Shown one piece after another: positions 283 through 61,984 of a DNA stretch of 64,000 nucleotides. The stretch is from Octopus sinensis. Lineage: Eukaryota. Numbering within the stretch: position 1 is the first letter of the stretch; every line of letters begins with the position of its first letter. The position numbers and the translations under genes are program-made. The DNA lies in NCBI RefSeq assembly GCF_006345805.1, contig NC_043005.1:21824001-21888000 (forward strand), in the 5' to 3' direction. A model generated the notes under the pieces. That model saw only the letters and a list, made by a program, of their open reading frames with translations. It did no database searches and was not told the DNA's origin.

Positions 283-516
283 CTGATGATACGGAAATTA
301 AGCTTTCTAAAGTTAGCGCACCTGGACATAATGTTTTAAAGAAACTTCAGAATGTGAACTCAAAGAAGTGTAATGAAGCTTGCCTCCAACATTCAGAATG
401 TAATTCTTATGAGTACAATAAGAAAGAAAAGGTCTGTGATTTGAGTGATGTGACTCATTTGACTGATAAACTTAAACCCAATAATGGAAATTGGGATATT
501 TACATCATTGATACAG
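283..516 (+). CDS. Exon 1 (A0): PAN/apple type A domain
   Basis: ttccttccag|CT GAT GAT ... GAT ACA G|gtcagt; 234 nt; [77 protein letters not shown]. Confidence 0.88.
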
Positions 517-3500: not shown

Positions 3501-6500
3501 ACAACAGGTTCTGAAGCCTGGCTGGAATGAAGCCACTGGTTTCTCTTAATAGGATTATGAAAATACATCTGTCTTTCATCCGCAGCTGTAATTCAATGCC
3601 AAAAATAGGCATCATGAGGAGTTGGCCACAATTGTTGGTAAATGTTCACATGTCATTGAGCCTAGTCATTGGTTCGTTCAAGAGGAACTTCTCCACAGCA
3701 TCTGTTCACAAGTCTGAGCTTATGGTGGTGTTGATTAATGGTGCTTTGCGAAGGACCAAGTTCTGCTGACCATGTATGTCTGTTTGGGCTTGGTTTTTGT
3801 TCAGCCATTTCTAGCAAAGCAAAGTCTTCCACAACAGAAGGTCTCCCTGGCCTTGGTTTGTCTTTGAGGCTGGTGTCATCTTAAAGTGTTTAAAACAGCT
3901 TTGTGGCTGATGTTCATAAACAGTTCCTGGTCCTTCCAAATCACTAATTTCTTTTGCCATTGCCCTTACACTTAATCCTTTTTTCTACAGCTTCAATAAA
4001 ATGGCTCTAATTGCAATTTTTCCACCACTCATTATCAAAGCTGTAAAATAAAGGATAACCAATTTGTGATTAATATGTTCATCATTATCATCATCATCAT
4101 CATCGTTTAATGCCCGCTTTCCATGCTAGCATGGGTTGGACGATTTGACTGAAGGCTGGCGAACCAGAAAGCTGCACCAGGCTCCAATCTGATCTGGCAG
4201 AGTTTCTACAGCTGGATGCCCTTCCTAACACCAACCACTCCGAGAGTGTAGTGCGTGCTTCTACATGCCACTGGCATGAGGGCCAGTCAGGCAGCACTGG
4301 CAATGGCCATGCTCAAATGATGTTGTTTACGTGCCACCTGCACAGGAACCAGTCCAGCAGCACTGGCAATGACCTCACTCGAATGTCGTTTTTCACATGC
4401 CAGTAAGGTGATGCTAGTAACGATCACACTCGAATGGTGCATTTTACGTGCCACCAGCAGGGAAGCCAGTTTGCTGCTCTGGCAATGATCACACTCAGAT
4501 AGTGCTCTTAGCGTTCCATTAGCACAGATGCCAGTCATCGAATTTGATTTTGATTTCACTTGCCTCAACAGGTCTTCGCAAGCAGAGTTTAGTGTCCAAT
4601 GAAGGAAAGGTATGCATAAGTGGACTGGTTACACCCCTGGCATTGGCCACAAGGTTATGGTCTCACTTGGCTTGCTGGTTCTTATCAAGCCCAGCATATT
4701 TCCAAAGATCCCGGTTACTAGTCATTGAGAAGAAAATGCATACATTCATACATACGTACGTACATACATACATACATACATACATACATGCATACATACA
4801 TATATACATACATACATACATGCATACATACATTTTTATACGTGTGTTTGCATCTGTGTATGTATTTGTCTTTGTGAGCAGATGTCTTCAGATTATTACG
4901 CTCAATACTTTTCATCGTAAGATTGTCATTAACTCCTTATTCTCACCCTCCCCCAAACATACTCTCACCATTGACACCAGTTTCTTCTTTCAATTCCAGT
5001 TTACTCCGAAGTTAACTGTGGACCACCAAAAGACATTGTTGGTGCTGACAAGTCCTACAATAGCACCTCCTATAATTCTGAAGCGACCTACACTTGTCCA
5101 GAAGGAGACAAACTAAAGTCAAAATGTAAAAAGGATAATAAATGGTCTCCAGTAAATTCTTCATGTAAAGGTAATGTAAATAACTTCCTTTTTGTTGTCA
5201 CTGTCAGGGTAATCTTATTTTATTTTTGTGCTAAATGTCTTTGCCAGAGGAAGTCAGCTGACTCTTTGACAATTTATGCAGTGTTTGTAGCTGGTGGAAG
5301 AGACAAAGGAAGTTGTCCTCAGACCAGATACTTCCCAAAATGCTTGCAACAGAGTGGACATCATTAATTCTATCCTAGGGTAAAGTATTAAATTGGGTGA
5401 CAGATTAAGTCTCTCAACAGAAAATTTGAAATGTGATGGTCTGTTCCCTCCAGCAGATATCCATAGTTTCCATTTACCAGATTTCATCCTTAATTCCGAA
5501 GCAAATTTTTAACAAACTTTTCATCACATAACTAAGATTCTACCCAGGACCACAGTATTTTGAAGTATTGTTCTTAACCTCATAGTCATACTGAGGATGT
5601 CTATGTAGATCTCTTAATTTCCAACCTAACCTTTTTCCCTTGTACCATGTATCCTCATCCAAAACTCTGTGCAATATAATGCTCCTAAGTCCTTCCTCAC
5701 TAAAATTCAACAATCTTTTGAAATAGCCTTCCAATACTCTAACAATTCTTCTAATCTACCACCCTTAATTGTAATAAATGCAATTAATATCAATGATGGG
5801 TTTCTTTTAATTTATTCACAAGGCCAAGAATTTTTGATGGCAAGAGTTTAGACTTTTCCCTTGACTTCAGTACTTGAATAGTACTGACTTTTATCAATCC
5901 CCAAATGGATAACAGGCAAAGTTGACCTTTACTGGATTTGAACGCAGAGCATAAAGAGCTTAAATATACAATGTTACAGATTTTTGCCAATGTTCTAATG
6001 ATTCTTTGAGTGAACAATTCTTAATTATAAAAATATTAACAATTATTAACATATAAAAGCAGATGGTATATATTTAAAAAGAAATGATGATGATAACAAC
6101 AACAGTGATGACACCAATGATGTCATGAACAATGATAGCACCATCAATAACAAGGGTGCCATCAACAATGACAATGGCAAGGACACTGACAAATCCACCA
6201 ACAACAATGTTCATGGTGCATTCCTGCAAATACAGGAGGACTCTTCTCTATGGCTTATCAAGAAATCCCATGGTCCAAAATCACTGTATACACTGAGTAG
6301 ATATATCCTCACCAATTGTCATCCTCTGACCTACAACCTCATACAGATTTGTCCCAATAACTCTTGTAAATTTTGCCACTTACACACACTTTTGATTGAA
6401 TTTACCCTTCCCACCCTCACTTTCATTTACAAGTGAAACTTTAAAACACAATGAATTATCAACCAAAGTTACAATTGGACATTTCAAACATCCACCTCCA

Positions 6501-9500
6501 ACTTTCTTTTTTATGGCTTCACGAATATAACATCATAAATTCTAGATCCATGATAGAATGCATTCAGTATATTTTGTAATATATGTAGTAAATTAGTATT
6601 GAGATCACAGTGTTGAGAGGAACTTTATTCTTGTCTTGACCACGGTATGATGACAACCTATGAAATACTGGTGCCATAATTAAATACACCTTGTACAATC
6701 TGTTAAGTAGTTGGTGTTCAGAAGGGGATCCAGCCAAGAAAGTATGCCAAAATAAAACATACAAGTGAGAAGTGCCCCCGATTTCTGACCAGGGTTTGAG
6801 GGGCAGTAACTTTGAATAAAAACTGACTCAGATATGACAAGCTGTCTAGTCCTAGCCAGCATCATGGAAAGAGGACATAAAATGATAATGATGATGATAT
6901 ATATATATATATACATGGTTTTATATGTGTGTGTTGGTTTCTTGATACAAACAGGAAAAAATAGGGCTCAAAAGACAAACATATAAATTGATTTTTAACT
7001 GCAGAACTTGTGTGTGTGGGTGTCTCCCCACATGTTCAGATCATCACTTCTGATGGTCAAATCATTGTCAGAGTCTTCTCTTTTGCTCATTCCATCTTAT
7101 TCCTCTTATACTTAAATTTTTCCTCAACACATTTGCACTTTCTATGCATGCACAATAATGTTGCACATTCATTAGATCACACTAGCTCTATTTTCTCTCT
7201 AGTCTTTGTACATCTTCTGTATTTATGGCCTTTCTCTCACTGCCATGTATTGTAGGTGATGATACACAAGTAACACACAATCTGCCTTTCACTCATAGTG
7301 AGAGACCATTTGGTGCCACCAGAGCTTATAGCTTTCTGAACTTTCTCCATCTTGTTATTCAACTATACATACTTAACATCCTCTTCCTCTGCTAATTAGG
7401 TCACCAAGTTAAGAGAAACCATTTACAGCTTCCAGGGAACCTCCTGGGAATTCGAGAAAATCCAGTTCCTGTGTGTTTATTGTTTCTGCACATCTGTCAC
7501 GTACAAAGACATCTTTCTTGGTTAACATTCCTGTGATTCCAGTGCATCTCTGATGTGTCCATATGTCGCACTGGGTACACCATATGGAATTCCTACCAAC
7601 ACCTTTCCTATATATTGGGCAGAGCACGCACATAATATACATGCAGTATTGATATCAATTTCTGTTCTCAATTTCAGCTTATGCAAATATTAACTGCGGA
7701 ACTCCAAAGGAAGTTGTTGGTGCATCAAAGTCCTACAAAACAACCACCTATAAATCTGAAGTGACCTATACTTGTCCAAAGGGAGAACAACTAAAGTCAG
7801 TATGTGAAAAGAACAATAAATGGACTCCAGTGGTAGAAGCCTGTGAAGGTAACGCAAATAGCTCATCTACTGTTGTTTCTGTCTATGTAATTTTGTTTTA
7901 TTTTTATGTTAAATGTGTTTGTCAGTGGAAGACTAACAGAATGCATACTAAGTTCTATTGTGCTTATGGCTGATGATGAAGGAGAACTTGTTATCCTTGG
8001 ATCAGAGATCTCACAAATGCTTGCAACAGAGTGGACATCATTAATTCTACCCAGGGGCCAGGTGATGGTATTAAACTAGAGAATGGATTAAGTCCAGGAA
8101 ACAAGAGTTGGTAGCTTAGAAACTTGTTCTTCTCCTGCAAGCTTTCACATAACTTGTATCCACTATATTTCATTCCCAAAGCTTAGTTGTGAAGTTAATT
8201 TTTAACCATGCAGACAAAACTCCACCATCCTCGATATTATTGTAAACTTATTACCTCCAAATCTAATCTTGATGGATATTCTCTTAATTTCTAACTTGAT
8301 TTTTCTCACCCATTCTTTGTGGCATCCTGCCTGTTAAGTGGGGATAAATATAATGTATGAGTTCTTCTTTACTAAAACTCTGCACTTCTCTGAAACAGTC
8401 TTCTGATGTTCTTGTTATCTTCCAATCCACCACCCTTAAAAATAATATTGCTACTAATAATAATAATGAAGATTTCTGATTTAGTCACAAACCAATTATT
8501 TCTGACATCATCTTCATTACCATCATCATTTAACAGCTGTTTTCTATGCTCACATGGCTTGGATGGTTTGACAGTGTCCAGTGAACCACAGAACTGCATC
8601 AAGCCCCAGTGTTAATTTTGGCATGGTTTCCACAACTGAATAACTTTCCTCACAGTAAACACTTTACAGTGTGAACTGGATCCCTTTCCTTGGTACTAGT
8701 AAGGTCACCATTAACTTGCAAGACAAAATAAAGGAAAATGAAGAAGCCCCCTTTTGAGAAAGAAGGAGCTACATTTGTGAAGGATGAAGTATAATAGAGG
8801 GAGGAGCATAGTTGTTTTACTATAGAGGGAATGCATGTTTACTCCATGTTATATGAGGGTGGGTGTGAGTAGCTGAAAGAGAGATAAAATTTGTGATGGC
8901 AGGGTGCCAGATCTCACTTTCAAGGCACAAGAAGGTTATTATAAGAAAGAATATAGACAGTTGATCAAGAGGGAAGGAAAGGGTGGATAATTTAATAAGA
9001 GTATGGGAAGAGAGTGTCAGATGGTTAGAGACTGGGCTAGAGGTAGGTGTAGTGAGGGATGAAAAAGGGTGAGTGTTGTTGATGGTAAATATCAGTATGG
9101 TGGGGAAGTTGAAAGATAGAAGTGGCTCAAGAAAGGTGGGGATGACAAGCAGCATCACATGAGAAGTGGAGAGCATCAGTATCATATATGGGTGGAGAGA
9201 TGAGAAAGTAAGGAGATGATATATAGGATGATAGTGTGTAGGGTGAGAGGGTGTGACTTCAGCAGCTGAGTAGTACTAGGTACACATGAAATGTAAATAT
9301 GAGGATGAGGATGCAATCCTTTTGAATGTTGAAGAATCTCTGTCTAGAAACATTTCTAGAAACCCACCATCAAAGATCACCCTGAACTTCAAGTTCAAGT
9401 GCCCTCTCCAATTATTGTTCTCTGAGCTACAGGTTTATGCACTGTAATCCCCATTCACTCAAGCCATTTTTACCATGCTCACTTTGCTTTCAGTAATTTA

Positions 9501-11597
9501 CCTTGAGAACAGTACCTTCCTCTCTATCCCTGCTCTCTCTGCAAGTGAAATTTACAAATGCAGATGAGGGATTGACCAAGGAGGAAGTCATTATTGTCTG
9601 ACATTTCAAATTCATTCACTTAACGATCTCATTTGCTATAGGTACCTCACAGAGGTAAAATGCTGTCTCTGCCCAGATAAAGAAGGGTGTGAGGTAATCA
9701 TTCTACACATAATACCAGCTGTTTGATATAACTTCACAACCCAACAATGCATGCATCTCAAATTGGCTTGTCCTAGCATTTCATTGAATGGAGATTTTAT
9801 TTTGATCCAGGAGAGCCCCTTTGTTAGCACTGCCAAAGCAAGGACTTCAGAAAGTTTCCCAGTGTTATTCCTTGAACAAAAAGTCCTTCAAAACAAACTT
9901 AGCAGTTCATTGTCAATGATGACCAATTAAACCTGAGAATGTCATTGTTTTATCCCCCCATTAACTCTCAATAGATTGTTAGAGTGGAACATTCACCAAT
10001 CTCATTGCCTCGGTCATATCTGATCTTGTACACTGTATTTTCTGTATTTTTTTTTATTACATTAGATAATGTGAATACCTTTTTTAAAGATGGTTAGGAA
10101 TGATTGATATTTCTGACATATTGGGCATCTACATAGGGATGCTGAACTTAATATTGCAAGCTCAGAGATTTGACACAGCATATCCTCTGATTTAATCTGT
10201 TACCTGGTTCAGCACCACTACCTGGCCATTCAGCTAGTTGTGGTGATTGTAGTGGACAATACTTGGTCAATATTTATATATTTACTAGCAGCGATACCCA
10301 GCATTGCCCGTGTTCCATACAATTGAAGAATTAGACTTTTCTGTTATATTTTCTCTAATGAACTGGAATATCTATATTTCGAATTTCATCAAAATTGCAG
10401 ATGAGAGTATTTTCCTCTTTATTCACCCCCAAAAAATTGTAATCGTATCACATGTATCCCATACTGCTGATTTTTATGCGCATATTCCAAAATTCCAGTC
10501 TTATTGAACCTGTTAAAAAGATTTTGCTCCTGAAAAATGAAGGTCATGGAGCTCTAAAATGTGAGAGTTAAGGCACCTGTTGGGAGTGGGCATCTTAATG
10601 TCAACCAGAAAAGTTGAATTGTTGAGAATCTTTTTAACTTGGGTCTTATATCTATTGTTTGAATTTCTTTGAAATAGGAAATATATGTTCACTGAGTTTG
10701 TAAAAGAGAGCAAAGCTAAAGGAAACCAAAAGACAAATGATCACAATAAGCAGTCAGTTATCCTACCCTAGTTGTTACCACTCCTAATGTAGGATTCCTC
10801 ACCATCCAGGTGATAGGCACAGCCGTAAGATGCATTACGAATCTATAGCAATTGGAAGAGCATGGCCCAACTAAAATAAACATTAACAACTGTGTGATGT
10901 GAGGGCTAAGGAGAAATGAAAGTGTCACCTCTGGAGTTTGCAAATGATCACTATACTGATACGTAACTGGACAGAATAAACTTACAATCTATAAATGTCT
11001 TTGAATAACCAGTCACTCATCTGGGAAGGCCTTGAAATCAATGTTAGTATCTGGGGACTATGTGTGACCGAGTGATAATAGAAAGACTGAAAGGAGGTCT
11101 GCAATCAAATAACTTTACTCAACACTTTGAAACTGATGCAAAGATGCCTCTCAATTACTCGACAATTTATGCACCACATTGCAGAAATTCCAATGTAAGT
11201 GCATGTCAAAGCAAACTGTCACACTGTTGTACCATTGAATTAAAAATAATGCTCAAATTTATGCTCGGGTAACCCTACAGCTTCCAAGAGCACAACTGTA
11301 TTCGTTTTTGCTTAGATAAAATGACAAAATTATGGGTGTTAAGTCCCCATGGAGGGGTCTTTCTAACTTGTAAGAAGATGAAACTTTATAAATATTACTT
11401 CATTTGTGTCTAATATCTATGGTTAAGATTTCATCAACAGCAAAAATATATGAATTGTCATGGGGGTTATGGCTCTTATGCATAGAATATAATTTCCAAA
11501 TTTCATAAAGATCCATTCACTACTTTTGCCTAGTTTTGGATCATAAAAGAAATACTAAAATTTGGGAGTTAAGGCTCCCGTTAGGGTGTTATATATA

Positions 11598-11682
<85 letters not shown>

Positions 11683-11687
11683 GATAA

Positions 11688-11738
<51 letters not shown>

Positions 11739-33751: not shown

Positions 33752-33805
<54 letters not shown>

Positions 33806-35093: not shown

Positions 35094-35127
<34 letters not shown>

Positions 35128-36946: not shown

Positions 36947-36977
<31 letters not shown>

Positions 36978-45900: not shown

Positions 45901-48241
45901 GTGGTGGTGGTGGTGGTGGTGGCGGCGGCGGCGGTGGTGGTGGTGAGCTGGCAAAACTGCTACCATGCCAGGCAAAACGCTGTGATCGACTGTCTCCCTC
46001 CCCACAAAATCCAGACCCTATGCCTATTGTAGAAAAGATTATTATTATTATTATTGAATGAGAGAGCAGTGCATGCCATCAAAGTTACACTGGGGTAGAA
46101 TATATGAATTCCAGTATAATCATCATGTCTACCCATCTGATGAGGGTACATTAGGCACATACATCACAAGCATATGTGTGCAACATGGTGACTTCATATC
46201 AAGATAAACAACACATGATCTAGCAGGTGGGGCCCAGTTAGAATTTCCTTCAGGTCAAGTAGACCATCCCACTCCAAAGCTTCCTGAATAATAGTTGTTT
46301 AAGGCTGTCAAACGTAACACCCACGTTCGCAGTGGTGAATTATTCAAACTCCATAAAATTCATCTCAACACATGGCTATGATACTCTCTCACTGCTTCTG
46401 CTCATGATCAGAGATGCAAATATCGTCAGCCACCAAAGGACATGCTCAACTGGTTAAGGTCAAACAACTGACAAGCTATTCTGTGGTATTGAGCAGAATA
46501 TTATTACTACTACTACTACTACTACTACTACAATGATGATGACGATGACTACTTTATAAATATATTTAAAATAGATGCTTGACTGGCACCCGTGCCAGTG
46601 GCACATAAAAAGCACCATATGAGCATGGTCAGTGCCAGTCCCATGGGACTGGCTCCTGTGCTGGTGGCATGTAAAGTGTGCTATTCAAGTATGGTCATTA
46701 CCAGTTCTACCTAACTGGTTCCTATGCTAGTGGCAGATAAAAAGCACCATTTGAGGGTGGTTGATGCCAGTACTGCCTCACTGGCCCTCATGCAAGTGAC
46801 ACATAAAATGCACCCACTACACTTTTGGAGTGGTTGGTGTTAGGAAGGGCATCCAGCTGTAGAAACCTTGCCAGATCAGACTGGAGCCTGGTGCAGCCTT
46901 CTGGCTTGCCAGTCCTCAGTCAAACTGTCCAACCCATGCCAGCATGGAAAGCAGACGTTAAATGATGATGATGATCATGAGATAATTAAGCACAAATACC
47001 AGCAATCAAGATTTTGAATAAAATATGAGAAAATCCTCTGTTGCATTGTTTTATAAGAGAATTCATAAAAATAAAAACAGTTCCCATCTACAAAATTATT
47101 TTCCAGTTTAGGACACTGTAAGTACTGAGATATGTTTTGAAATAAGTCTCAAGATGTTCTACAGCTCACATGGAATCTGATTAGGGTGACATTTTGTGAA
47201 TTTTTTACTTATTTATTATAAATTATCCATTTACAGAATTTTGCACAGATACTTTATAATATCTAATATATGAATGTGTGTGTGTGTGTGTGAGTTGGGT
47301 GGTTGGAGTGTAAAATGTATTTCTTGTTCTCTCTTTCTTTTTCCAGCTAACAAACCTTTTATGCTGAAAAAAGTTAGCATACCAAAGAAGGATTCTTTAG
47401 GACAGATTAAGAATAAGACCTTAAAGGAGTGTGCTAAGGCTTGTCAACATTATATAGGATGTAACTCTTATCAGTACAATGAGAAAGATAAGTTATGTGA
47501 TCTGAATAATGCGACTCAGTTACCTGATGTACTTAAACCCAACGACGGAAATTGGGATATATATTTGCTTAACCCAGGTCAGTAGAGTATTTCCATTTTA
47601 TTTATTTTGTACCTGTGTATTTACATATGTGTGTGGTGTATGTATATATATATATATATATAATAAAATATTAGGGAATAAATCCAAACTTACAGGGAAA
47701 AATCAGATTTAGGATTAAATCCAATTTTATAGTATAAATATATTATATTATATTATATTAAATTAGAGATAAAACCACTATTAGGCAAATCAAACAATGA
47801 AAAACATAAGCCAATACATAAAATTAATTAATTTATATTTTAGATATATATCAAAAGTATTAAAAATTTAATAAAAGATAAAGAGTAAAACACTACGATC
47901 GTTTCATGGCTGTACAATTCGTAATAATTCGAGTTATGGTTACAGTCAATCTTCAGGTTAATTGAAATATCTAAAATATAAAATATAATCAGAAATATTT
48001 AAACAATATTTTAAAGATATAAATAATATAATAATTTTACTTATAATAAACTCTATTATCAAACTAGAAACATAAAACTTAACAATTATGATTATATCAA
48101 AATCGACTATAATGTTAAATATTAATTTTAATTTATAAGGTAGGAAACCCACCAATAATCTAATATCGGTATAAGTCTATATCTAATATATACAATATGT
48201 ATATGTATGTATATATATATATATAAATATATATATATATG

Positions 48242-48327
<86 letters not shown>

Positions 48328-51300: not shown

Positions 51301-52743
51301 TCAAATGGTTTTCACAGCTGACCGTTCACCCGAATTACCAATCGGATGCCGCTATACAAGGCAGCAATCCAACTGTGGAAGACGGACCAAGCCAGCCGCC
51401 CTGGGGATGGCTGCCAGGTACTGATGGTCGACCCTATTGAAAGCTTTATATTGATCCAAATTGATCAGCGCCCCACCCATGCCAGGATCCTTATCTACCC
51501 TGTCCACGATGTAGCACATCAGATGGAGGTTGTCATGGATGGTTCTGCCCGGCACAGCGCATGTTTGCACCTTGTCGACCAGTTTATCGATGATAAGCGC
51601 CAACCTCTCGGCTATTACTTTGGTCAAAAATTTCAAATCTGCATTGAGCAGAGTATTGGGCCTGAAATTATCTATAAAATTCCACTTGTTTGGGTCTTTC
51701 TTCAGCAACGTCACTGCACTTTGGCTCACCAAACCGGGGATTCTCCTGTTTTGTTGCCAGTTGCAGTAGACGGATGCCAAGAGGTCGCCAAACAAGTCTG
51801 GCATTTGACAATACAGCTCGTAGGGTAGACCATCCAATTCAGGCAACTTATCCTTTGCGCAGCCCGCCATCGCATCCCATACTTCTGCAGCTGTGATAGA
51901 ACTCTCACAACACTCTGCTGTTGAAAGGCCTCACACATCCTTTCGGGTTCAAGTAAACTGTATCCCTGTTGATCTATTAGAGACCAAATGGTGGCTTTGT
52001 TGCCACGTTGCGCCACTGCTACCCAGGCCCCTCACGCAGCTTCAATTCCTTCATTCCTCAAGGCATGCATCTTAGCTCTGATGATGCAAGCTTAGTCTAT
52101 ATGTATACAACCATAGTCTATATGTATACACGAAGTGAGTTTTGTATGCGAGCAAGATTGCGTATACATATGTGTACATGTATTTGTGTGTATATTTTCG
52201 TTTTGCATTTATATGTCTGTATATGTATGTGGTCTGCGCATATCTATCTGTGTATTTTGATGTATATATGTATATTGATGGTTTAGCATGTGTATATACT
52301 GTTGTGAAATATTATATTTTAATATATTTTAATTTCAATTTTTATGTATTAATTGTATTAATCAAATTATATTTTCTACATAATTAATGACAATATGCAT
52401 CTTCGATTTAAGGTTTTTCCTCGATTTTTATAATTTTATATGGAATTCATTTATTTGTTTTGTTTATTTTTGTTTATCACTCACATATGACCATTATTTG
52501 AAAGGACCAATCAAACAAATCCATTTTTAAAGGTGTGTCGCTTATGCTAGTCTTGATCAAATTGTCATTTCGGTTCTATTTTAACAAAACTGTCCGACGA
52601 ACGGAGATGTGAAACTCCGAGTAACAGCTTTTGTTACATTTCTGCTGCTTTTAAATAAAGCATATTACTCTACCTCTGGTATTTGAGTACTCTTTTTTCC
52701 ACCTTGTTTCACATTTATGTGTTTACTTCGGTATATATATACA

Positions 52744-52779: not shown

Positions 52780-52878
52780 TATATATTAAGATGGAGAGAT
52801 TTGCCTTGCAGTTACTTTGCATTGTTCTGGCCTTACCCACGTTCCTTTATATTATACATATATATATATATATATATA

Positions 52879-52955
<77 letters not shown>

Positions 52956-54391
52956 TTATATATATATTATTGAGTTAGAAAACAGAGTGTTCTAAAGGAT
53001 ACAAATTTATTCATTAATTAATCAACATATTAACCAACAATTGTTTCATTTCTCAAATAAGATTAAAATTACAAAATATATATAAAAATATACTTTTGCA
53101 TTTTAAATACCTTATAAGGAAAATTTTAATTTTATTTGAGAAGTGAAACAATTGTTGGTTAATATAATGATTAATAAATTAATTTGTATCCATTAGAGCT
53201 CTCTGTTTTTTTAACTCAATAAAAATGTATGATATCTTATGATATTCTATATAATATATTCATTGAAAGATTATCTCTTAAAAACTTGCTATATTAAACC
53301 AGTGTACCTTGGATAAAAATCCCTAGAAGAAGTATGAATATCTTCATTGTGACTATCTATATTTATATTTATATATATAGCTGTGTGTAGTTTGTTTTAG
53401 TCAATATTTTTATTTCTAAATTCACCTTGATTTCCTTGTTCTCAACCACTCCTGGTATACATGCACCACTGATATCAATTTCTCTTATCTTTCAGCTTTC
53501 AGAGAAGTTGACTGTGGACCACCAAAAGATGTTGTTGGTGCCAAGAAGTCTTACAAAACCACCACCTATAAATCTGAAGTAACCTACACTTGTCCAGAAG
53601 GAGAAAAATTACAATCAGTATGTAAAGAGGATCGTAAATGGTCTCCTGTAGCGTCTGCTTGTAAAGGTAAATTAATGTAATCAGGTTCTCTCTTGATGTC
53701 TCTGTTTCAGTAATTTTGTTTAATTTTTTTCTTAGATATTGTTGTCAAGTTATAGCTCAGCTCATCTTCGTCATTTTCCTCTTCATTTTTAACTCTTCTC
53801 TTTTCACCCATTCTTCATGTCATCATCTGAAACTTTGTACAATAAATAGCCCTGGGTACTTCTTTACTAGAATTCAGCAGCTGACTGAAAGATTTCTGAT
53901 GCTTTACTGATCTTCCAGTTCACTATTCTAAATTATGATAATAATTTGAAATATTGGCACAAGGTCAGTAATTTTAGGGGAGGAGTAAGTCAATCACATC
54001 AACTCCAGTGCACCATGGGTATTTATTTTATCGACCCCAAAGGGATGAGAGACAAAGTCAGCTTTGGCAGGGTTTGAACTCAGACTGTAAAGACAGACAA
54101 AATGCTTAGCAGCAGTTTGTCTGGCATGCTAACAATTCTGCCAGCTCACCACCTTATCCTAAATTATGATAATATAAAAAATAACGATCTTTCTAGGTGA
54201 GAGGGAAAAAAATTTAGATAGAAGGGGTTTAGTCATTATTATTGACTCCAGTGCTTGACTTGTATTACGTGATATTGGTCCCCACAAGAAAGAAAAGCAA
54301 AGGTGACATAAGCTAGATTTGAACTGAAAACATGAAGAGTCTAAGTAATTCCCTGAAGTATTTCTTCTAATGCTCTAATTAGTATACAGGT

Positions 54392-54422: not shown

Positions 54423-57400
54423 CCATCAGTTTTCCATGATAGTATGGGTAGGACAGTTTGACAGGAACTTACAAGTCAAAAAACTTCACCAAGCTCTACT
54501 GTCTGTTTTAGCATGGTTTCTATGGTTGCATACACTTTATAGAGTAAACAGGATGCTTTTTACATGGCTCCAGCACCAAAGAGATCACCACATAGCTTAC
54601 AGACAAGACTCTCAACTGGTGGGGGAGTAGTATTGAGTAGTATGTTGTGTACTTGAAGAGAATCTTGGCTTCCTCAAATGAAGAAGTGAGAGACAAGAGA
54701 AAAATGGTGCAGGTGTGACAGAAGTGGGGGCAGGGGCCATAGACTCATATACAGGGTGATGTGTATAATGGAATAGACCAGGGATCAGAGAGGTGGGTGA
54801 TTGAAAATTAGAATGATGATACAATTCTGTGGAATGAAGGAGGTTCCCTATCAGGAGCCAATTGAAAAACCTCACGATCAACAATCATCAGTAACTCCTA
54901 GGACAAGTGTCCTCTCCAATTAATATTTAAGCACTGTGGGCCACATCTACTTTCACATGAATTTTTTAAAATTCCCTTGAGGAGAGCATCTTCCTCTCTA
55001 TCCTCACAAGGGAAACTTTAAAAATGCAGATTAGGGATTGACTAAAGAGGAAGTCCCCATTGTCAGACCTTTCAACCTCATCCACCACACAACCTTTTTT
55101 GTCATAGCAACAAAACAGAGAAAAACTGCTTTCTCTGCTGGATTAAAAGAACATGTGGGGCAATCATCATGATGGACATAGCTGACAGACTAATTTGAAC
55201 CACACACAATAGCTGCTGTTTGACTTAAGGCTACAAGTCAAAAATGTCTGGACATTCAACATGGATATGTAAAATTAGTTTGTTGCACTGTGCAGATCTC
55301 AGATAGGACTGTCTGATGACACCTCTGTGGCTGTAGATTATATATTGGGCTTTTAGAGCCCTTTGGTAGACTTTTGCCAAGGACTTCAGGAAGTTGTCCA
55401 TAGTATTCTTGGAACAAAAAGTTATCTTTCAAATAAATTTTTTACCTCATTTTAATCAAAATCCAGAGAGTTTCTGAGAATGTCAGTGCTCTTTCCCTCT
55501 GATGAATCTTTTATTAACTACTAGAGTGTAATACCTACCATTTCTATTGCCCAGTTGAGGTTTGATCCATCCAGTATGTTTAGGACTACTTTAGATAACC
55601 TAGCCTTCCTTTTTTCATATAGTGGAGTGTGATTGAGAGAGATTTTCATAATAGGTCTACCAAGATGGGCATCTACACTGGGGGCTTTCAACATGATGGT
55701 CAACAGTAAATATTGAACTTAAAATTGCAAGCTAACAGATATGACATGGTTTATCCTCTTGTATGAATTTTTAATCTTTTTTAGTACCACTTTCTGACAC
55801 TTCAGCTAGTCAAGGTGATGGTTGTGAACAATGCTTGATCCAATGTAAACATATTTATTGCAATAATAGACACTGACATTGACCACCACCACCACCACTA
55901 CTCCTAGATGTTCATGTAGGGCATTGATCACATTAATCTTACAAGTGTAGGAGGGAGTGTGGCTTCAGAATTTCATGACAGCTATTTTTGCCACTGTTAG
56001 CTTATTCAAAGATATGAGGACCACCTCATTGTAATAAGTTATGTATTCATTATTAAGGTAAATGGCCAAACATAATTAGAGAAAGCAATGAAAGTGAGTG
56101 ATATTCATGTCTTACTTAAGAGTAGTGACTGTCTAAGTAAAGTGAACTGACTTGGACAGAGAATCAAATCCATATTACTCACTCAAGCCATGTATATGTA
56201 CCAAGACAACAATGCAGGAAGTTACTCAGGTCATTTCCTGCATGGGAAACGAATAGTGAAGTGGCTACTTATTGAATCAAGGTATTATGATTTCACCCTC
56301 AAAGTCTTGTAAAATTATTGTTAATGACTCATTCATTAAAAGAATAATTTTGATTAATTAATATTTCTTAGCTTGTTACATTAAATTGTGGCTGTCCACA
56401 TTTACTACATATATATTTATTCACCAGACAATGATGAAAGTAAAATTATTTTAGTTTTTCTAGGCGTAATGTTGCAAAATGTGATGGGTTGTAGGCCTTG
56501 TCATGACCAGCCAGATTTAGTTATGTCCTTTTACATTCTGGGTTCAAATCACACTTGGATGTACTTTTGGTTCATAAAGTAAACATTAGTCAAGCAGCAA
56601 AATAGATTTCTTCATATGTATTCTCACTGCAGAATGAGTGGCTTTGGCCACACCAATCCTAAAATATCATTCTAAAGATTACAAGCCACCAATCTCATAG
56701 CTACAAGATAATGCAAGAGTCATTCAAAACTTGAATAAATAAGCTTTACATTAGACAAAATAATTTGAATGCGAAAGGGTTAAGTTAGGAACCATTATCA
56801 TTAATATTGTTACCATCAACAATAATTATAATTATTCTTGGGCGTTGGGCTTCACGGAGGCAAAGGGGCTTGGTTTCTTTCGAGCACTGGTCCTCATGGA
56901 GGCAAAGTGGATAAGTTCCTTTTGAGCATTGGGCTTCATGGTGGCAAAGTGGATGAGTTCCTTTCAAGCATTGGGCCTCACGGAAGCAAAGTGGTTGAGT
57001 TCCTTTCGAGCATTGAGCCTCATGGAGGCAATGTGGCTGAGACTGTTTGGAGTGTTAAGCCTCACAAAGGCAATTACCAAGACCTTTGGCATTATTTTGT
57101 ACTTGAGAAGAAGCCCCATCAAGCTGAGCAAAATCATAATCATGACAGATACTGGTATCATACAAATAGCACCCATGCCAGTGGTATGGAAAAGCACCCA
57201 TTACACTCTCACAGTGGTTGGAGTTAGAAAACCATGCCAAATCATACTGGAGTCTGGTGCAGCCTTCCAGTTTGCCAGACCCGCTCAAAGTATCCAACCT
57301 ATGCCAGCAAGGCATATGTTAAATGATGATGATGATGATTCTTCTTCTGATAAGGAGGTATTCATAGAATCATTTGAACATCAGGCAAAATGTGTTGTGG

Positions 57401-60400
57401 TTTTAGTTCTAGCTCTTTAACTTCGAAGTACATATCCTGCTGATGTTAACTTTCCCCTTCTTGGGCCAATAAAATACAATACTACTCAGGTATATAGTAC
57501 AATGTAATTGACCACATTCTTCCTCAAAGTTTTGGCCTTCTTTCAATGTTAGAAATTATTTTTGTTGTTCAGATCGACTACATCCTCGCCAGAAAGAGAG
57601 AAAGAGGGCTGTTTATAAATGCCAAAACCTTCCCAGGCGAGGAATGTACTCCTCAACATAGATTAGTAGTTAGCGACTTCAGGATCAGGGCCAAATGGCT
57701 GCCCAGAAGAAGACCAGCTCAGAGGAGAAGAGTCTGGAAACTTAAAGGTCCTGTAAATGGACGGAGATTTAGAGAAGTTCTACTCGAAGCTTTCGACGAA
57801 ATAGAAGAGGAAATAGCTTCACATAGTGTAGAAGACAACTTGAGGTTTCTACAGGACAACCTGCTGAGAGCCACTGACCAGATCTGTGGATGGAGCAAAG
57901 TCCCATCTCGTCCCAGGGTAACGTGGTGGTGGAACAATGTTGTAGACAGGGCTATTAGAGACAAGAGACAGGCTTGGAAGGACTGGAGGAAAGGCGGTAG
58001 TAGGGAATTGTATCAGACTGCGAAAAGAGAAGCTAAGAGACAGGTATATTTAGCTAGAGGGGAAGCAGATAGGAAAAAATTTGCCAATGTTCTGCACCGT
58101 GAGGACCAAAGACTTGAGGTGTTTCGTGTTGCAAGACAGTGTGTGAGAGAGAATCGTGATGTGGTAGGAGAGAAATGTGATCGCATGGATGATGGTTCAC
58201 TTGCGCTAAATGAGGATGCAAAGAGAGAGGTTTGGAGATGCCACTATGAAAGGTTGCTCAACAAAGAGAATGAATGGGATAAAGAGAGTCTGCCGAATGT
58301 CGACCCAATAGAGGGACCAGCCATCCGAGTTGACAGTTCCATAGTAGTTAAGGCAATTGGAAGCATGAAGACAGGGAAAGCCCCAGGCCCATCAGGAATT
58401 ACTGCTGAGATGCTCAAAATATCTAGCAGTGTCGGCTATAGCCTAGTCACCCGTATAGTTAACCAGGTGATACACGAAGGAGTCATACCCAATGACTGGT
58501 GTAGTAGCATAATAGTCAACTGTTACAAAGGTAAAGGTGACGCCCTAGATACAAGTAATTACAGAGGTATCAAGCTGTTGGACCAGGTAATGAAGGTTAT
58601 GGAAAGGGTCATGGCCCAACTGATTAGAGAGAGAGTCAACTTGGATGAGATGCAGTTTGGTTTCGTGCCAGGGAAAAGCACCACTGATGCCATATTTCTG
58701 ATAAGACAGCTGCAGGAGAAATACCTAGCCAAAGATAAAATTCTGTACCTGGCTTTCATTGACTTGGAGAAAGCCTTTGACAGGGTCCCCCGTTCCCTTA
58801 TCTGGTGGTCAATGAGGAAACTAGGGATAGATGAATGGTTAGTGAGAGCTATGCGTGCCATGTACAGGGATGCTGTTAGTAAGGTGAGGGTTGGCAACGA
58901 GTATGGTGAAGAATTCCGGGTGGAGGTTGGGGTTCACCAAGGCTCAGTCCTCAGCCCCCTCCTATTTATCATAGTCCTCCAGGCAATAATGGAGGAATTC
59001 AAGACAGGATGCCCCTGGGAGCTCCTCTATGCTGACGACCTTGCTCTAATTACTGAATCACTATCAGAACTCGAGGAGAAGTTTCAGGCGTGGAAGCAAG
59101 GATTAGAATCGAAAGGACTTAGAGTCAATCTAGCTAAAACCAAAGTCCTAATAAGTAGGAAGGTAGACAAATCTCAAACGCCTTCAGGTAGATGGCCCTG
59201 CTCGATCTGTAGAAAAGGCGTAGGTAGGAACTCTATAAGATGCACCAAGTGTAAGCTATGGACACATAAGAGGTGCAGCAATGTCAAAGGAAGGCTAACT
59301 AGGAATATAGTTTTTGTATGTGGCAGATGCTCTGGTGCAATAAACACTGAAAATGCGCAGAGACCATCTTCCGCCACATTCCAGGGAGAAAAACTTGAAA
59401 TAGTTGATAGTTTCCATTACCTAGGTGACCAAGTCAGTTGCGGGGGTGGGTGTGCCGAAAGTGTAACTGCTAGAGTAAGAATAGCCTGGGCAAAGTTCAG
59501 AGAGCTCTTACCTCTGCTGGTGACAAAAGGCCTCTCGCTCAGAGTAAAAGGCAGACTGTATGACGCATGTGTGCTAACAGCCATGCTACATGGCAGTGAA
59601 ACATGGGCCGTGACTGCTGAGGATATGCATAAGCTCGCAAGAAATGAAGCCAGTATGCTCCGTTGGATGTGTAATGTCCGTGTTCATACCCGACAGAGTG
59701 TAAGTGCCTTGAGAGAAAAGTTAGACCTAAGAAGCATCAGATGTGGTGTGCAAGAGAGGCGTCTACGCTGGTATGGACACGTAGTAAGAATGGATGAAGA
59801 TAGTTGTGTGAAAAAGTGCCACACCCTAGCGGTTGAGGGAACCTGTGGAAGAGGTAGACCCAGGAAAACCTGGGATGAGGTGGTGAAGAACGACCTTCGC
59901 TCTTTAGGTCTCACCGAGGAAATGACCAGAGACCGAGACCTTTGGAAGTATGCTGTGCGCGAGAAGACCCGGTAGGACAAGTGAGGCCATAACCCATGGC
60001 CCCTACCTGGGACGTAGTCAGTCCACCTGTGCATACCTTCCTTCTTGGGACACATAACTCTACTTGTGAAGACCTGTTGAAGCAAGTGAAAATCAAAAAA
60101 TCAAAATCGATGAACATCAATGGAATTTGTAGTGTTGTGATACCAGTGCCGGTGGCACATAAGAAAACCATCCGAACGTGGCCATAGCCAGTACCACATC
60201 GACTGGCCTCCGTGCTGGTGGCACGTAACAAACACCATCTGATCGTGGCCATGCCGGTGGCACGTAAAACACACCATCCGAGCGTGGCTGTTCGCCAGCC
60301 TCGTCTGGCACCTGTGTTGGTAGCACATAAAAAGCACCCACTACACTCACGGAGTGGTTGGCATTAGGAAGGGCATCCAGCTGTAGAAACACTGCCAGAT

Positions 60401-61063
60401 CTGACTGGCCTGGTGCAGCCTTCGGGCTTCCCAGACCCCAGTTGAACCGTCCAACCCATGCTAGCATGGAAAGCAGACGTTAAACGATGATGATGATGAT
60501 GATGATGTTAAGTTTCCAATTGTTTCAATCTTGCTTTAATTCCAGCTGCTAAGATCCATTTTGTGAAAGTAAAAGATGCAGTTCTGGATGTATCTGGGAA
60601 AGCATTGTTTCACCAGAAAAATATATCAGCAGATGATTGTGCTACAGTGTGTTTGTCTGATGAAACTTGTTTGTCATTTGAAATAAAGAAGGAAGATGGA
60701 GAATGTTATTTATCAAAGAAAACTGCAACTAAATCCAAGAAAATGAAATCAACCCAAGGCTATGATTATTACCAGCGAATACAACGTAATTATTCTTTGT
60801 ATTTTATTGTTGGATTCTCATTTCCTCTTTTTTTGAAATTTGTGATTCCATTTGTACTTCTACCATGATAGATCGCTAGCCACTAAACATTTTTCTATTT
60901 TCTCTGCCTGTTTATATCTGTGTTCTTTTCTGCTGAAAAGCATAGGCTCGAAACATAAAAGACTTTCTCACTTCTTGAGTATTAAACTAATGCATCTGTT
61001 TGTTGTTTATACAGCTGTCTTCACTTTTTGTAAATTTTCCAAATTCTCACTATATACACTATA

Positions 61064-61146
<83 letters not shown>

Positions 61147-61984
61147 GTATATAATTCTAAGAGAGTTAGAGGTTGTGAATCCAACCAACTAAGGGATAAT
61201 ATCTAGCCAGTATACTGCTGGTAGAATACCCAATTATAAATGCACAAGTGTTTTTTTCATTGCATGGCAATTATATTATTGAGTGTAATAAATGGGTGAT
61301 GGTAAAACGTTATTTTACCCTTAATTTATATAGCAATAAGAAAATGGAGGGGATCAAGAGTTGATATGTATTTATATTTATAACTTAACCTTATGAACTT
61401 TCTAAACTCTCTACTGAAGCCCAGAGACACACCCAAGTACCTTAATCTTATCTACCAAATACTTCAGTTCACTGGAGGGATAAAAGTAGAATGGGGTACT
61501 ATAGCCTCTTGGCTGAAACAGCTGTAAGATTTTACCCTACTTTCTATGTTCTACGTTATATATTTTAATAATTACTGATATTTTTATATTTTATATATTA
61601 TATATGTAAAGCATAATATGTTATACATGTATGTATATTGCTATAATTTGTACATTTGAACAATTTATGCTTTGGACGCTATATAATTTTTAATGTGAGT
61701 GTGTGTGAGAGTATAAAATGTATTTCTTATTTTCTTCCTTTTTTTCCTAGACAAAGATGATGTTTTGATACTTAAAAGCACTTCCGTACCAGGGTATGAT
61801 ACATTTGAGCGGCTGAAAGATGTGAGCTTAAAGGAGTGTGATCATGCTTGTCATCAAAATCCAGGATGTAACTCTTATGAGTATAATGAAAAACTTAAGT
61901 TGTGTGATCAAAGTAATGTGACTCACTTGACTCAGGACCTTGTACCCGACACATGGGAATGGAATACTTACATCATTAACCCAG
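283..61984 (+). CDS. Partial multi-exon gene (16 exons in window, 1107 codons) encoding a large, probably extracellular PAN/apple + sushi (CCP) repeat protein; both ends lie outside the window
   Basis: 16 exons have polypyrimidine-AG acceptors and GT donors, lengths 171/231/234/240 nt, all phase 1-1. The concatenated frame has no stop. Cys spacing matches PAN/apple (C-x3-C-x5-C-x-S-[FY]-x7-C) and sushi (4 Cys, W before the last Cys). There are many N-x-S/T sequons. Confidence 0.88.
2955..4075 (-). mobile_element. Degenerate mariner-family DNA transposon
   Basis: Minus-strand fragments resemble mariner transposase (..[20 protein letters not shown], cf. ELLPxGxTINxxxYxxQL), with many stops and frameshifts; related to 33866-34930. 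Confidence 0.65.
4085..4732 (-). mobile_element. 5'-truncated RTE LINE copy (ORF end + 3' UTR + (GAT)n tail)
   Basis: Reverse complement matches ~59910-60506, including the ORF-terminal RDLWKYA region and the CATGCTAGCATGGAAAGC..TTAAACGATGATGAT tail. Confidence 0.8.
5000..5170 (+). CDS. Exon 2 (Sa): compact sushi/CCP domain
   Basis: caattccag|TT TAC ... TGT AAA G|gtaatg; 171 nt; [56 protein letters not shown] (not shown in this frame by the ORF track). Confidence 0.87.
7400..7645 (-). mobile_element. Old fragment of the PHD-containing RTE RT region (paralogous relic at ~40790-40985)
   Basis: Translation [44 protein letters not shown] resembles the PHD insert of the 57570-59975 ORF. Confidence 0.75.
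7678..7848 (+). CDS. Exon 3 (Sb): compact sushi/CCP domain
   Basis: aatttcag|CT TAT ... TGT GAA G|gtaacg; 171 nt; [56 protein letters not shown]. Confidence 0.87.
11596..11760. repeat. Compound microsatellite (TA)n-(GA)n-(GATA)n-(CA)n
   Basis: Direct reading. Confidence 0.95.
12036..14350 (-). mobile_element. RTE (BovB-like) LINE, 5'-truncated and frameshifted
   Basis: Overlapping minus ORFs carry RT motifs [66 protein letters not shown], a C-terminal [14 protein letters not shown] and [11 protein letters not shown], and an RTE-type 3' end. Confidence 0.88.
14388..14510 (+). mobile_element. RTE endonuclease fragment, inverted relative to the adjacent RTE body
   Basis: + strand reads [39 protein letters not shown], an APE endonuclease motif of RTE. 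Confidence 0.75.
14772..15011 (+). CDS. Exon 4 (B1): PAN/apple type B domain
   Basis: aattccag|TT TCT CAG ... GTT AAA T|gtaatt; 240 nt; [79 protein letters not shown]. Confidence 0.85.
16070..16300 (+). CDS. Exon 5 (A2): PAN/apple type A domain
   Basis: tttttccag|CT GAC ... AAC CCA G|gtgagt; 231 nt; [76 protein letters not shown]. Confidence 0.88.
17160..17575 (+). mobile_element. RTE 3' UTR-derived repeat with (GAT)n-like tail
   Basis: Matches 60140-60506. Further copies lie at about 6700-6900(+), 8515-8650(-), 22478-22690(-), 24770-25100(+), 28860-29300(+), 33465-33714(+), 37953-38113(-), 40110-40250(-), 42030-42185(-), 46580-46978(+), 54392-54600(-) and 56830-57345(+). Confidence 0.75.
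18880..20450 (+). mobile_element. Degenerate Tx1/L1-clade LINE ORF2 (RT region); flanking 18180-18750(+) and 20480-20950(-) may be ORF1 remnants
   Basis: [69 protein letters not shown]; stops and frameshifts. The ORF1 assignment is tentative. Confidence 0.8.
21267..21437 (+). CDS. Exon 6 (Sc): compact sushi/CCP domain
   Basis: tctttcag|TT TAC ... TGT AAA G|gtaaat; 171 nt; [56 protein letters not shown]. Confidence 0.87.
22035..22240 (-). mobile_element. tRNA-derived SINE (paralogous copy at ~53955-54155)
   Basis: Reverse complement has pol III A-box (TGGCAGAAT) and B-box (GAGTTCAAACC) followed by a body seen repeatedly in the window. Confidence 0.6.
25370..25609 (+). CDS. Exon 7 (B2): PAN/apple type B domain
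   Basis: aattccag|TT GCT ... ATA AAA T|gtaatt; 240 nt; [79 protein letters not shown]. Confidence 0.85.
27690..28272 (+). mobile_element. Mariner transposase relic, 3' half with TIR-like end
   Basis: [25 protein letters not shown], a YSPDLAPSD-like motif; ends in AAACTTTTCAGCTGACTTCG-TA. Confidence 0.75.
28388..28621 (+). CDS. Exon 8 (A3): PAN/apple type A domain
   Basis: ttttctag|CC AAA ... AAC CCA G|gtcagt; 234 nt; [77 protein letters not shown]. Confidence 0.88.
29390..30300 (+). mobile_element. Tc1/mariner superfamily relic, maT (DD37D)-like
   Basis: HTH region [27 protein letters not shown], then [27 protein letters not shown]; several stops. Confidence 0.75.
30353..30420 (+). pseudogene. 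tRNA-derived sequence (tRNA-Thr-like pseudogene or SINE head) with a shortened anticodon arm
   Basis: D-stem GCTT/AAGC around AATGGTA, T-arm GTGAG-TTCGAGT-CTCAT, A and B boxes; anticodon arm is ~5 nt short, so not a functional tRNA. Confidence 0.5.
30775..31460. repeat. Degenerate (CA)/(TA)-rich low-complexity tract with an internal ~140 bp tandem duplication
   Basis: 31011-31090 recurs at ~31150-31230. Confidence 0.8.
32816..32986 (+). CDS. Exon 9 (Sd): compact sushi/CCP domain
   Basis: aatttcag|TT AAC ... TGT TAC G|gtaaca; 171 nt; [56 protein letters not shown]. Confidence 0.87.
33866..34930 (-). mobile_element. Degenerate mariner-family DNA transposon
   Basis: [28 protein letters not shown] is the mariner HTH/RSGRP motif; same family as 2955-4075. 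Confidence 0.75.
37182..37352 (+). CDS. Exon 10 (Sa'): compact sushi/CCP domain, paralog of exon 2
   Basis: aatttcag|TT CAC ... TGT AAA G|gtaatg; 171 nt; [56 protein letters not shown]. Confidence 0.87.
41017..41187 (+). CDS. Exon 11 (Sb'): compact sushi/CCP domain, paralog of exon 3
   Basis: aatttcag|TT TAT ... TGT GAA G|gtaatg; 171 nt; [56 protein letters not shown]. Confidence 0.87.
43331..43570 (+). CDS. Exon 12 (B1'): PAN/apple type B domain, paralog of exon 4
   Basis: aattccag|TT TCT ... GTT AAA T|gtaatt; 240 nt; [79 protein letters not shown]. Confidence 0.85.
44530..45350 (-). mobile_element. Gypsy/Ty3 LTR-retrotransposon pol relic (RNase H end to integrase Zn-binding region)
   Basis: [27 protein letters not shown] and (H)[24 protein letters not shown]; no LTRs recognised. 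Confidence 0.7.
46055..46500 (-). mobile_element. SINE-like interspersed repeat (unclassified)
   Basis: GC-richer block bounded by simple-repeat tails and absent from the paralogous intron 15012-16069; family not named with certainty. Confidence 0.45.
47347..47577 (+). CDS. Exon 13 (A2'): PAN/apple type A domain, paralog of exon 5
   Basis: tttttccag|CT AAC ... AAC CCA G|gtcagt; 231 nt; [76 protein letters not shown]. Confidence 0.88.
48795..49290 (-). mobile_element. 3' end of a restriction-like-endonuclease LINE (R4/Dong-like); shorter copy at ~17665-17840
   Basis: Minus strand: [27 protein letters not shown].. and [21 protein letters not shown], typical RLE C-terminal motifs. Confidence 0.65.
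49780..52075 (-). mobile_element. Tx1/L1-clade LINE, 5'-truncated and frameshifted, ORF2 RT to C-terminus
   Basis: [76 protein letters not shown]-terminal [21 protein letters not shown]. Confidence 0.85.
52582..52636 (+). ncRNA. Type I hammerhead-ribozyme-like motif (Penelope-type minimal HHR) with U4C core variant
   Basis: Stem I TAACAAAA-CTGT/ACAG-c-TTTTGTTA; core CCGACGA (52594-52600); short stem II; GAAA (52611-52614); palindromic stem III ACTC-c-GAGT; predicted cleavage after GUA (52623). Confidence 0.55.
53496..53666 (+). CDS. Exon 14 (Sc'): compact sushi/CCP domain, paralog of exon 6
   Basis: tctttcag|CT TTC ... TGT AAA G|gtaaat; 171 nt; [56 protein letters not shown] (missed by the ORF track). 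Confidence 0.87.
57570..60506 (+). mobile_element. Young 5'-truncated RTE-clade LINE: uninterrupted ~800-codon ORF (end of APE, RT with PHD insert) + ~530 nt 3' UTR + (GAT)7
   Basis: QIDYIL..QHRLVV (APE), [84 protein letters not shown]; stop at 59973-59975; absent from the paralogous site near 25330. Confidence 0.93.
60546..60785 (+). CDS. Exon 15 (B2'): PAN/apple type B domain, paralog of exon 7
   Basis: aattccag|CT GCT ... ATA CAA C|gtaatt; 240 nt; [79 protein letters not shown]. Confidence 0.85.
61751..61984 (+). CDS. Exon 16 (A3'): PAN/apple type A domain, paralog of exon 8
   Basis: tttcctag|AC AAA ... AAC CCA G|gtcagt; 234 nt; [77 protein letters not shown]. Confidence 0.88.

Follow-up and report, generated by a model that had tools for sequence, protein, structure and literature searches.

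What kind of protein is built when exons of one domain each, all of the same phase, succeed each other over tens of kilobases of octopus DNA? The question is raised by 64,000 nucleotides of the Octopus sinensis genome (contig NC_043005.1 of assembly GCF_006345805.1, positions 21,824,001 to 21,888,000 of the forward strand), a stretch that we call the window and within which positions are counted. A first-pass annotation, made by a model from the sequence alone, had seen in it a giant array of interchangeable exons for PAN/apple and small Sushi domains, possibly spliced in many combinations. Our analysis confirms the array and favors ordinary splicing: the window is probably an internal piece of one giant, constitutively spliced gene of the Octopus lineage, coding for a secreted, multivalent and modular protein.

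In the model that we envision, each exon would encode one disulfide-bonded extracellular module, either PAN or Sushi (also termed CCP), and consecutive splicing would join these phase 1-1 exons into a long string, whose repeating unit may be a compact pair of PAN modules (class B, then class A) followed by one to three CCP spacers (class S). The array would have grown as cassettes of several exons, introns included, were duplicated in tandem again and again, transposable elements (TEs) being inserted into the introns afterwards, under a selection that would keep the frame, length, splice sites and cysteines of every exon and let most other residues change quickly. It would end in a GON domain, as in Octopus bimaculoides, and could have arisen by an enormous expansion of small secreted molluscan proteins made of PAN/Sushi and GON domains. 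Judging from the parts, its putative function would be that of a giant multivalent binder of glycans or proteins in an extracellular secretion or matrix.

Exons and modules of the array

Two exon searches agree on the content of the window: tblastn with one representative of each exon class (A, S and B), and profile hidden Markov models (HMMs) made from all octopus domains and run, with filters off, on every open segment in six frames. Both return 16 exons, all of them + strand and made up of 5 A, 7 S and 4 B (HMM E<=1e-27), which succeed each other as A,S,S,B,A,S,B,A,S,S,S,B,A,S,B,A. The HMM scan found no relic or pseudo-exon in the window, its next match after the 16 standing at E>=0.6. A pyrimidine tract with an AG acceptor precedes each exon and a GT donor follows it, and the boundaries are the only ones compatible with an open frame. 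Exon lengths (234 or 231 nt for A, 171 nt for S and 240 nt for B) are all divisible by 3, in phase 1-1. The array spans 283-61984 and its spliced product has 3321 nt, or 1107 codons. Thus the layout first proposed for these exons was correct in number, order, coordinates and product length, and the symmetric phase of every exon and the absence of pseudogenised copies (16 of 16 are intact) were borne out with it.

What do these exons encode? The whole product matches Pfam PAN_1 (PF00024) with 221.7 bits (E=6.8e-67) in 9 stretches, and single A and B exons reach 41.6 and 39.6 bits against a cut-off of 21.4. For Sushi (PF00084), the product gives E=7.7e-17 and a single S exon 23.7 bits (cut-off 20.7). 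The calls of PAN and CCP domains were therefore right, and the predicted fold described below agrees with them; their finer labels fared less well. Both A and B modules have four cysteines, spaced C-x3-C-x5-C-x11 and invariant in the 5 A exons, the 4 B exons and 29 B-A pairs. Cysteines so placed form two disulfides in PAN domains of the HGF N type. With four cysteines per module and not six, A and B lack the third, outer disulfide that joins the N and C ends in strict apple domains of the factor XI/prekallikrein type. They are PAN modules and not apple domains in the strict sense, so that only the first half of "PAN/apple" stands. The S exon covers the Sushi profile over positions 1-56 of 56, with C6, C32, C42, W48 and C55 invariant in 7 of 7, and is an ordinary short CCP, not a "mini-sushi". 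Only PAN and Sushi pass the Pfam cut-offs in the window product; vWA, EGF, HYR, pentraxin, CUB and ZP do not reach them. The product is indeed Lys-rich (14%, with an isoelectric point of 8.6). The N-x-S/T sequons that were said to be many are not enriched in it (15, vs 11.3 +/- 3.0 in shuffles; P=0.13). An extracellular product is plausible, because all its domains are of extracellular types and shorter relatives have signal peptides (read by eye).

B is always followed by A, over the shortest introns of the array (965-3776 nt). Given an alignment of 29 B-A pair sequences, AlphaFold2 (AF2) returned a model of 157 residues and two domains with a pLDDT of 91.3 and a pTM of 0.87, which implies that B-A may be a fixed, compact PAN pair. 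Matched by Foldseek half by half, the model resembles the HGF N domain (root-mean-square deviation, rmsd, 2.7-2.9 A) and the plasminogen PAp domain (1.5-1.9 A), with further matches to factor XI (FXI)/prekallikrein, MIC4 and SML-2. The helix on an antiparallel sheet that marks the PAN fold is present, by the AF2 model and these matches alike. In Foldseek, the orientation of B to A superposes on no known PAN tandem (rmsd 10-14 A). Since the pair is compact in the model, the array would be better parsed as one B-A PAN pair followed by one to three CCPs. A similar order occurs in a 356-aa protein of Argonauta hians, which has four PAN stretches and no Sushi by Pfam; its signal peptide and its order B-A-B-A were read by eye.

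A duplicated cassette under selection

How did the array grow? The window holds an A3 exon, a cassette of seven exons (Sb Sc B1 A1 Sd B2 A2), an Sa exon and a second copy of the cassette. Copy 1, introns included, lies at 3120-28713 and copy 2 at 33955-62080, both on the + strand, and the two align in colinear blastn blocks of 78-94% identity. Within them, the exons pair off as Sb (exons 2 and 10, 171 nt; 5000-5170 and 37182-37352, 94.7% nucleotide identity), Sc (exons 3 and 11; 7678-7848 and 41017-41187, 95%), B1 (exons 4 and 12; 14772-15011, of 240 nt with a T-ending donor, and 43331-43570), A1 (exons 5 and 13; 16070-16300, of 231 nt and nearest to residues 1333-1408 of the homologous model P0001, and 47347-47577), Sd (exons 6 and 14; 21267-21437 and 53496-53666), B2 (exons 7 and 15; 25370-25609 and 60546-60785, the latter with a C-ending donor) and A2 (exons 8 and 16; 28388-28621 and 61751-61984, 96%). 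The two remaining exons are the 234-nt A3 (exon 1, 283-516), which shares 79% identity with the domain that closes fragment P0012 and whose partner B exon lies upstream of the window, and Sa (exon 9, 32816-32986), which stands between the copies, has no partner in the window and is 82-84% identical to the Sa domains of P0001. The gene runs on past the window after exon 16.

Thus the array is a tandem duplication of about 32 kb, in which a seven-exon cassette was copied with its introns and TEs were inserted later. Copy number can vary, as the first-pass annotation had supposed: the duplication is seen directly when the window is compared with itself. The copies differ by 4-17% in their exons and by 6-22% over the colinear blocks, and each has private TE insertions (for example 57571-60505 in copy 2), so that they are not assembly duplicates; the duplication is real and fairly old. 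Because 14 of the 16 exons are seven pairs from one duplication, the 16 do not count as 16 independent observations.

Identity is uneven along the copies. Three blocks (copy 1 coordinates 4736-5770, 7410-8505 and 28283-28713) are 90-94% identical, as against 78-86% in most others, with two more at 88-90%. In the case of Sb, Sc and A2, each window copy has its nearest counterpart in the other one, ahead of every O. bimaculoides copy; with B1, A1, Sd and B2, one window copy or both are nearer to an O. bimaculoides domain than to the partner in the window. This pattern suggests patchy gene conversion or several rounds of duplication.

The introns carry TEs, as had been said of them: four reverse-transcriptase open reading frames (ORFs), a relic of a mariner transposase and repeats resembling short interspersed elements (SINEs). 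One of these ORFs, intact and 809 aa long (57546-59975, +), has a reverse transcriptase and a PHD-like finger and belongs to a 5' truncated retrotransposon without long terminal repeats (LTRs). Behind it comes a SINE-like element whose (GAT)n tail ends at about 60507. The insertion that carries both, at 57571-60505, postdates the duplication, because the homologous site in copy 1 (25327/25329) is empty.

Other repeats were recorded along the way. Degraded reverse-transcriptase elements lie at 12147-14171 (-), 18921-20343 (+) and 50544-51892 (-), at peaks of GC content of 0.42-0.50, the last two being inverted relatives of 67.5% identity. Of the SINE-like repeat, about 200-330 bp long, the window has at least 12 copies, which lie on both strands and are 70-92% alike (among them 4073-4402, 17271-17571, 22477-22669, 29106-29308, 33510-33716, 37946-38116, 46665-46997 and 60252-60511). 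The repeat occurs in the O. bimaculoides loci too; ARAGORN detected no tRNA-like head on it. Relics of DNA transposons and of an LTR element are found at 27792-27974 (+), 34618-34818 (-) and 44531-44866 (-): a mariner-type Transposase_1 match scores 24.5 bits against a cut-off of 24, and matches to a Mos1 helix-turn-helix and an integrase zinc-binding domain fall below their cut-offs. Microsatellites of (CATA), (TATG) and (TA) occupy 4739-4833, 11590-11747, 33730-33818, 35064-35156, 36899-37022, 48178-48332, 52848-52967, 61051-61153 and 63261-63436, and a 42-nt minisatellite 56845-57073.

Is the array maintained? We compared indels in the exon pairs with those in homologous intron of the colinear BLAST blocks. 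The intron has about 10 gap openings per kb, which predicts 14.6 in the 1458 nt of the seven exon pairs; there are none (P~5e-7). Stop codons are likewise absent from 42 ungapped S exons, taken from the window and the O. bimaculoides loci. The pooled ratio of nonsynonymous to synonymous change (dN/dS, or omega) is 0.67 from one cassette copy to the other, 0.56 in comparison with the O. bimaculoides cassette and 0.48 when the 42 S exons are paired in every way. Frame, length, splice sites and cysteines are thus kept, with most surface residues free to change, and by these sequence comparisons the exon array is real and under selection.

One gene, several genes or a splicing repertoire

How far does the array reach, and who shares it? 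A search of 5.8 billion proteins returned nine, all from Octopus (bimaculoides, sinensis and vulgaris) and labelled "uncharacterized protein" or SVEP1-like. An exhaustive search of representatives, with the homologous model P0004 as query, brought in LOC118764742 from O. sinensis (2643 aa), the model CAI9728790.1 from O. vulgaris (4470 aa) and many single-exon genomic ORFs. Relatives above 50% identity come from Octopus species only, which bears out the proposed lineage expansion. The remark that no named gene has this architecture was fair as well: the annotations are uncharacterized or mislabelled, and a full-text literature search found no publication on this gene.

The relatives share much with the window. 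The grammar (A S{1-3} B)n holds in 9 of the 9 models first retrieved from the three species, and LOC106869390, its neighbours LOC128248837-40 and LOC106869402, O. sinensis LOC118764741/2 and O. vulgaris CAI9728790.1 have the same three domain classes, exon lengths and phases; within the cassette, they and the window order their exons alike, as Sb Sc B1 A1 Sd B2 A2 Sa. The nearest is O. bimaculoides XP_014770598.1 (LOC106869390), at 77-93% identity per domain. The differences are that no window exon is 100% identical to any of theirs and that these relatives are fragmentary, uncharacterised predictions, some of them mislabelled SVEP1-like. Compared by blastn with about 200 kb of O. bimaculoides DNA, the window reaches at most 92% identity and shares no near-identical young TE; two of its ORFs, looked up as exact sequences, gave no match. 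In the O. bimaculoides cassette, too, every exon codes for a single domain, and its exons match those of the window in length and splice sites.

We compared the window with four O. bimaculoides loci (L001-L004) on CM046610.1. In the stretches sampled, same-strand exons run uninterrupted from 88,248,352 or before to the stop codon of a GON domain at 88,815,828, at least 0.57 Mb, of which about 170 kb were read as DNA and about 390 kb were not. The DNA seen holds 92 exons, and extrapolation through gene models gives an estimate of about 150. At the downstream end, the last exons of LOC106869390 lie directly upstream of LOC106869402 on the same strand, a gap of Ns (L001 about 9900-9980) cutting the B exon between them; the GON domain (E=1.2e-34) closes LOC106869402, and a CACHD1-like gene comes next. 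Upstream, and also on the same strand, are LOC128248837 to -40 and a 4083-aa model, and the spaces between the models hold unannotated exons that obey the grammar. The end of LOC128248839 is a read-through of a canonical B donor (L003 57033), and LOC128248840 is made to start at an ATG within the final 13 nt of an A exon (L004 10001). The three model boundaries examined inside the array are thus artefacts of annotation or assembly.

Several observations weigh against a single, constitutively spliced gene. Codon position 3 is nearly as conserved as positions 1 and 2, and this, together with an omega of 0.5-0.7, suggests a weak constraint on amino acids, so that some exons could be dispensable. 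Expression and splicing in the order described would rest on conservation and on predicted gene models. Followed both ways in O. bimaculoides, the array yielded its C-terminal GON end; its 5' end and signal peptide were not reached, exons continuing to the upstream edge of the furthest locus. Finally, we infer a single transcription unit of at least 0.57 Mb from strand, grammar and artefactual model ends, across the 390 kb not seen as DNA. The most drastic alternative would be a repeat that has no function and is decaying, or a product of misassembly in which repeats were collapsed or expanded. The weak constraint and the repeat-rich surroundings would suit it, but exons free of indels and stops next to introns of the same age riddled with gaps, exon lengths and splice sites identical in another species, and the divergence and private insertions of the copies all speak against it. 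The indel test largely refutes decay, and we consider this explanation very improbable. A tandem cluster of several separate, medium-sized genes, with the window inside one of them, deserves more attention, although we still hold it to be unlikely. The NCBI and ENA annotations do divide the region into models of 667-4470 aa, a transcript of more than 0.5 Mb is demanding, and the unseen part of the O. bimaculoides array leaves room for gene ends. Yet the three boundaries examined all proved artefactual (they stem from a donor read through, an ATG near the end of an A exon and a gap in the assembly), exons in the right grammar fill the spaces between models, and no model has a signal-peptide start or a natural C-terminus, except the last one with its GON domain.

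Could the exons instead be used combinatorially, by regulated skipping or by choice among like exons, so that many isoforms form a recognition repertoire? Any exon can be skipped without frameshift or stop, and fast amino-acid change would suit recognition. In addition, the proximal intron flanks of 89 paralogous exons (16 from the window and 73 from the O. bimaculoides loci) equal the exons in conservation and are the only hint of regulated splicing: over the 60-90 nt just downstream and the 30-120 nt just upstream, identity averages 0.66-0.79 between pairs, codon position 3 of the same exons has 0.63-0.77, and flank identity drops to 0.35-0.55 by 150-240 nt from the exon. Sorek and Ast are said to have reported in 2003 that such flanks mark regulated cassette exons in vertebrates. 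But signals for exon definition, needed in long and TE-rich introns, or tracts of gene conversion would account for the flanks just as well, and symmetric phase 1 is the default of shuffled extracellular modules, inherited by duplication, and is no evidence of choice. The first-pass annotation had also argued that no exon starts with AA, AG or GA, so that any junction is free of stops. The fact stands (the first two letters of an exon are CT, TT, CC or AC, the last letter is G in 12 exons, T in 3 and C in 1, and 0 of 120 forward donor-acceptor combinations make a stop), but its weight does not, as by our own arithmetic the chance probability is about 0.66. The argument is nearly empty because only the three T-ending B donors could make a stop, and the exon after B is always A, where a start with AA, AG or GA would already spoil ordinary constitutive splicing; S and B acceptors descend from two ancestors, and the argument shrinks to 2-3 independent ones. 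Moreover, the alternation of the three exon classes obeys a fixed grammar, shared across cassettes and species, and the predicted models of three species join consecutive exons, which fits constitutive use better than a choice as in Dscam. Clusters of the Dscam type are runs of same-class alternatives with pairing of docking and selector RNA, whereas in the octopus array three classes alternate and Sa, Sb and Sc are each conserved as distinct types. Combinatorial use therefore strikes us as doubtful, at odds that we put clearly below those of a gene cluster. Its boldest form, in which one unit of an estimated 150 exons and more than 10,000 residues would have flanks that drive programmed in-frame skipping and would yield a tunable repertoire of PAN/CCP binders, is if anything the longer shot. 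If true, it would be a cephalopod-specific generator of diversity beside the known protocadherin expansion and RNA editing.

Among the database relatives we found no spliced transcript of the family; the short proteins 45-79% identical to it are unspliced single-exon genomic ORFs that read into introns. Examples of the conserved flanks are 5171-5260, 7849-7940, 15012-15100 and 16301-16330. After the Sa, Sb and Sc donors an open hydrophobic frame continues for 40-60 codons (5171-5364, 7849-7970, 32987-33111, 37353-37546 and 41188-41309). A membrane-anchored isoform read through these donors was considered and rejected, stops following after 10-20 codons in most O. bimaculoides copies; the open frame is conserved DNA and not coding.

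If the array is indeed one gene, it would rank among the largest protein-coding genes of animals. It would also be a clean and datable case of a giant extracellular protein made by cassette-wise exon duplication from a small PAN/Sushi+GON ancestor, in a process that would include concerted evolution, accumulation of TEs in introns and selection that preserves frame and cysteines as surfaces diverge. Current octopus annotations cut the locus into arbitrary, mislabelled fragments, and the array merits re-annotation. Candidate roles could lie in secretions (saliva, mucus, sucker, egg coats) or in recognition.

Comparison with known systems

Where does such a protein come from? The GON-domain end links the array to short molluscan proteins with the same types of module and a C-terminal GON. 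Cuttlefish GON-Sep-2 (UniRef R4FJA6) has Sushi and GON by Pfam, with a signal peptide read by eye; Acanthosepion pharaonis CAE1175485.1 has an A-type PAN, two Sushi (one confirmed by Pfam, the second by eye) and GON; and Haliotis "ADAMTS9/20-like" proteins of about 300 aa have PAN and GON by Pfam and, by eye, a signal peptide. The A-type PAN motif SNVTH..L.P..W.WD.YI.NP is alike in the window and the cuttlefish protein. The small proteins have 1-3 modules before GON and no repeated B-A pair, whereas the octopus array is of the order of 100+ modules; the window itself has PAN and Sushi, and GON comes in the O. bimaculoides continuation. Ruder et al. are said to have reported in 2013 a "metalloprotease GON-domain" class from coleoid posterior salivary glands. 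The name GON-Sep presumably fits that class, which we take as a pointer to where expression might be sought and not as evidence on the octopus gene.

Two other kinds of protein share single parts with the array. ADAMTS9/20 and Caenorhabditis elegans GON-1 have a C-terminal GON domain in common with the O. bimaculoides array end, and this domain acts in transport from the endoplasmic reticulum to the Golgi in ADAMTS9/GON-1 (PMC3338439). An ADAMTS9/20 or GON-1 identity was rejected, as no metalloprotease, disintegrin or TSP1 occurs in the models or the window. By profile searches of the PDB, the nearest structures are Toxoplasma gondii MIC4, Sarcocystis SML-2, Eimeria MIC5 and the HGF N domain; these microneme adhesins and HGF N/plasminogen PAp are the nearest solved structures both by profile (4a5v, E=4.9e-6) and by fold (rmsd 1.5-2.9 A), but at only 12-27% identity and in proteins without CCP modules. 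The PAN modules of MIC4 and SML-2 and the HGF N domain bind galactose or heparin, and CCP modules are rigid spacers.

The closest parallels in construction are giant modular proteins. SVEP1, CSMD, complement receptor genes, Drosophila dumpy and hemicentin have in common with the octopus array a single module per phase 1-1 exon, growth by tandem duplication of exons or cassettes and very long extracellular strings, probable ones in the octopus. The SVEP1 identity given in O. vulgaris and O. sinensis annotations was nonetheless rejected: only PAN and Sushi reach the cut-offs, vWA, EGF, HYR and pentraxin are absent, and precomputed Pfam lists of the homologs hold PAN, Sushi and GON, with faint MBD matches in two. 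Thus the general kind, a mosaic extracellular repeat protein of phase 1-1 modules, is known, and no protein that joins PAN pairs, CCP spacers and a GON end is described in the literature searched. Unlike SVEP1, CSMD, dumpy or hemicentin, the octopus array does without vWA, EGF, pentraxin, CUB and ZP in the window, and alternates PAN pairs with CCPs up to a GON end.

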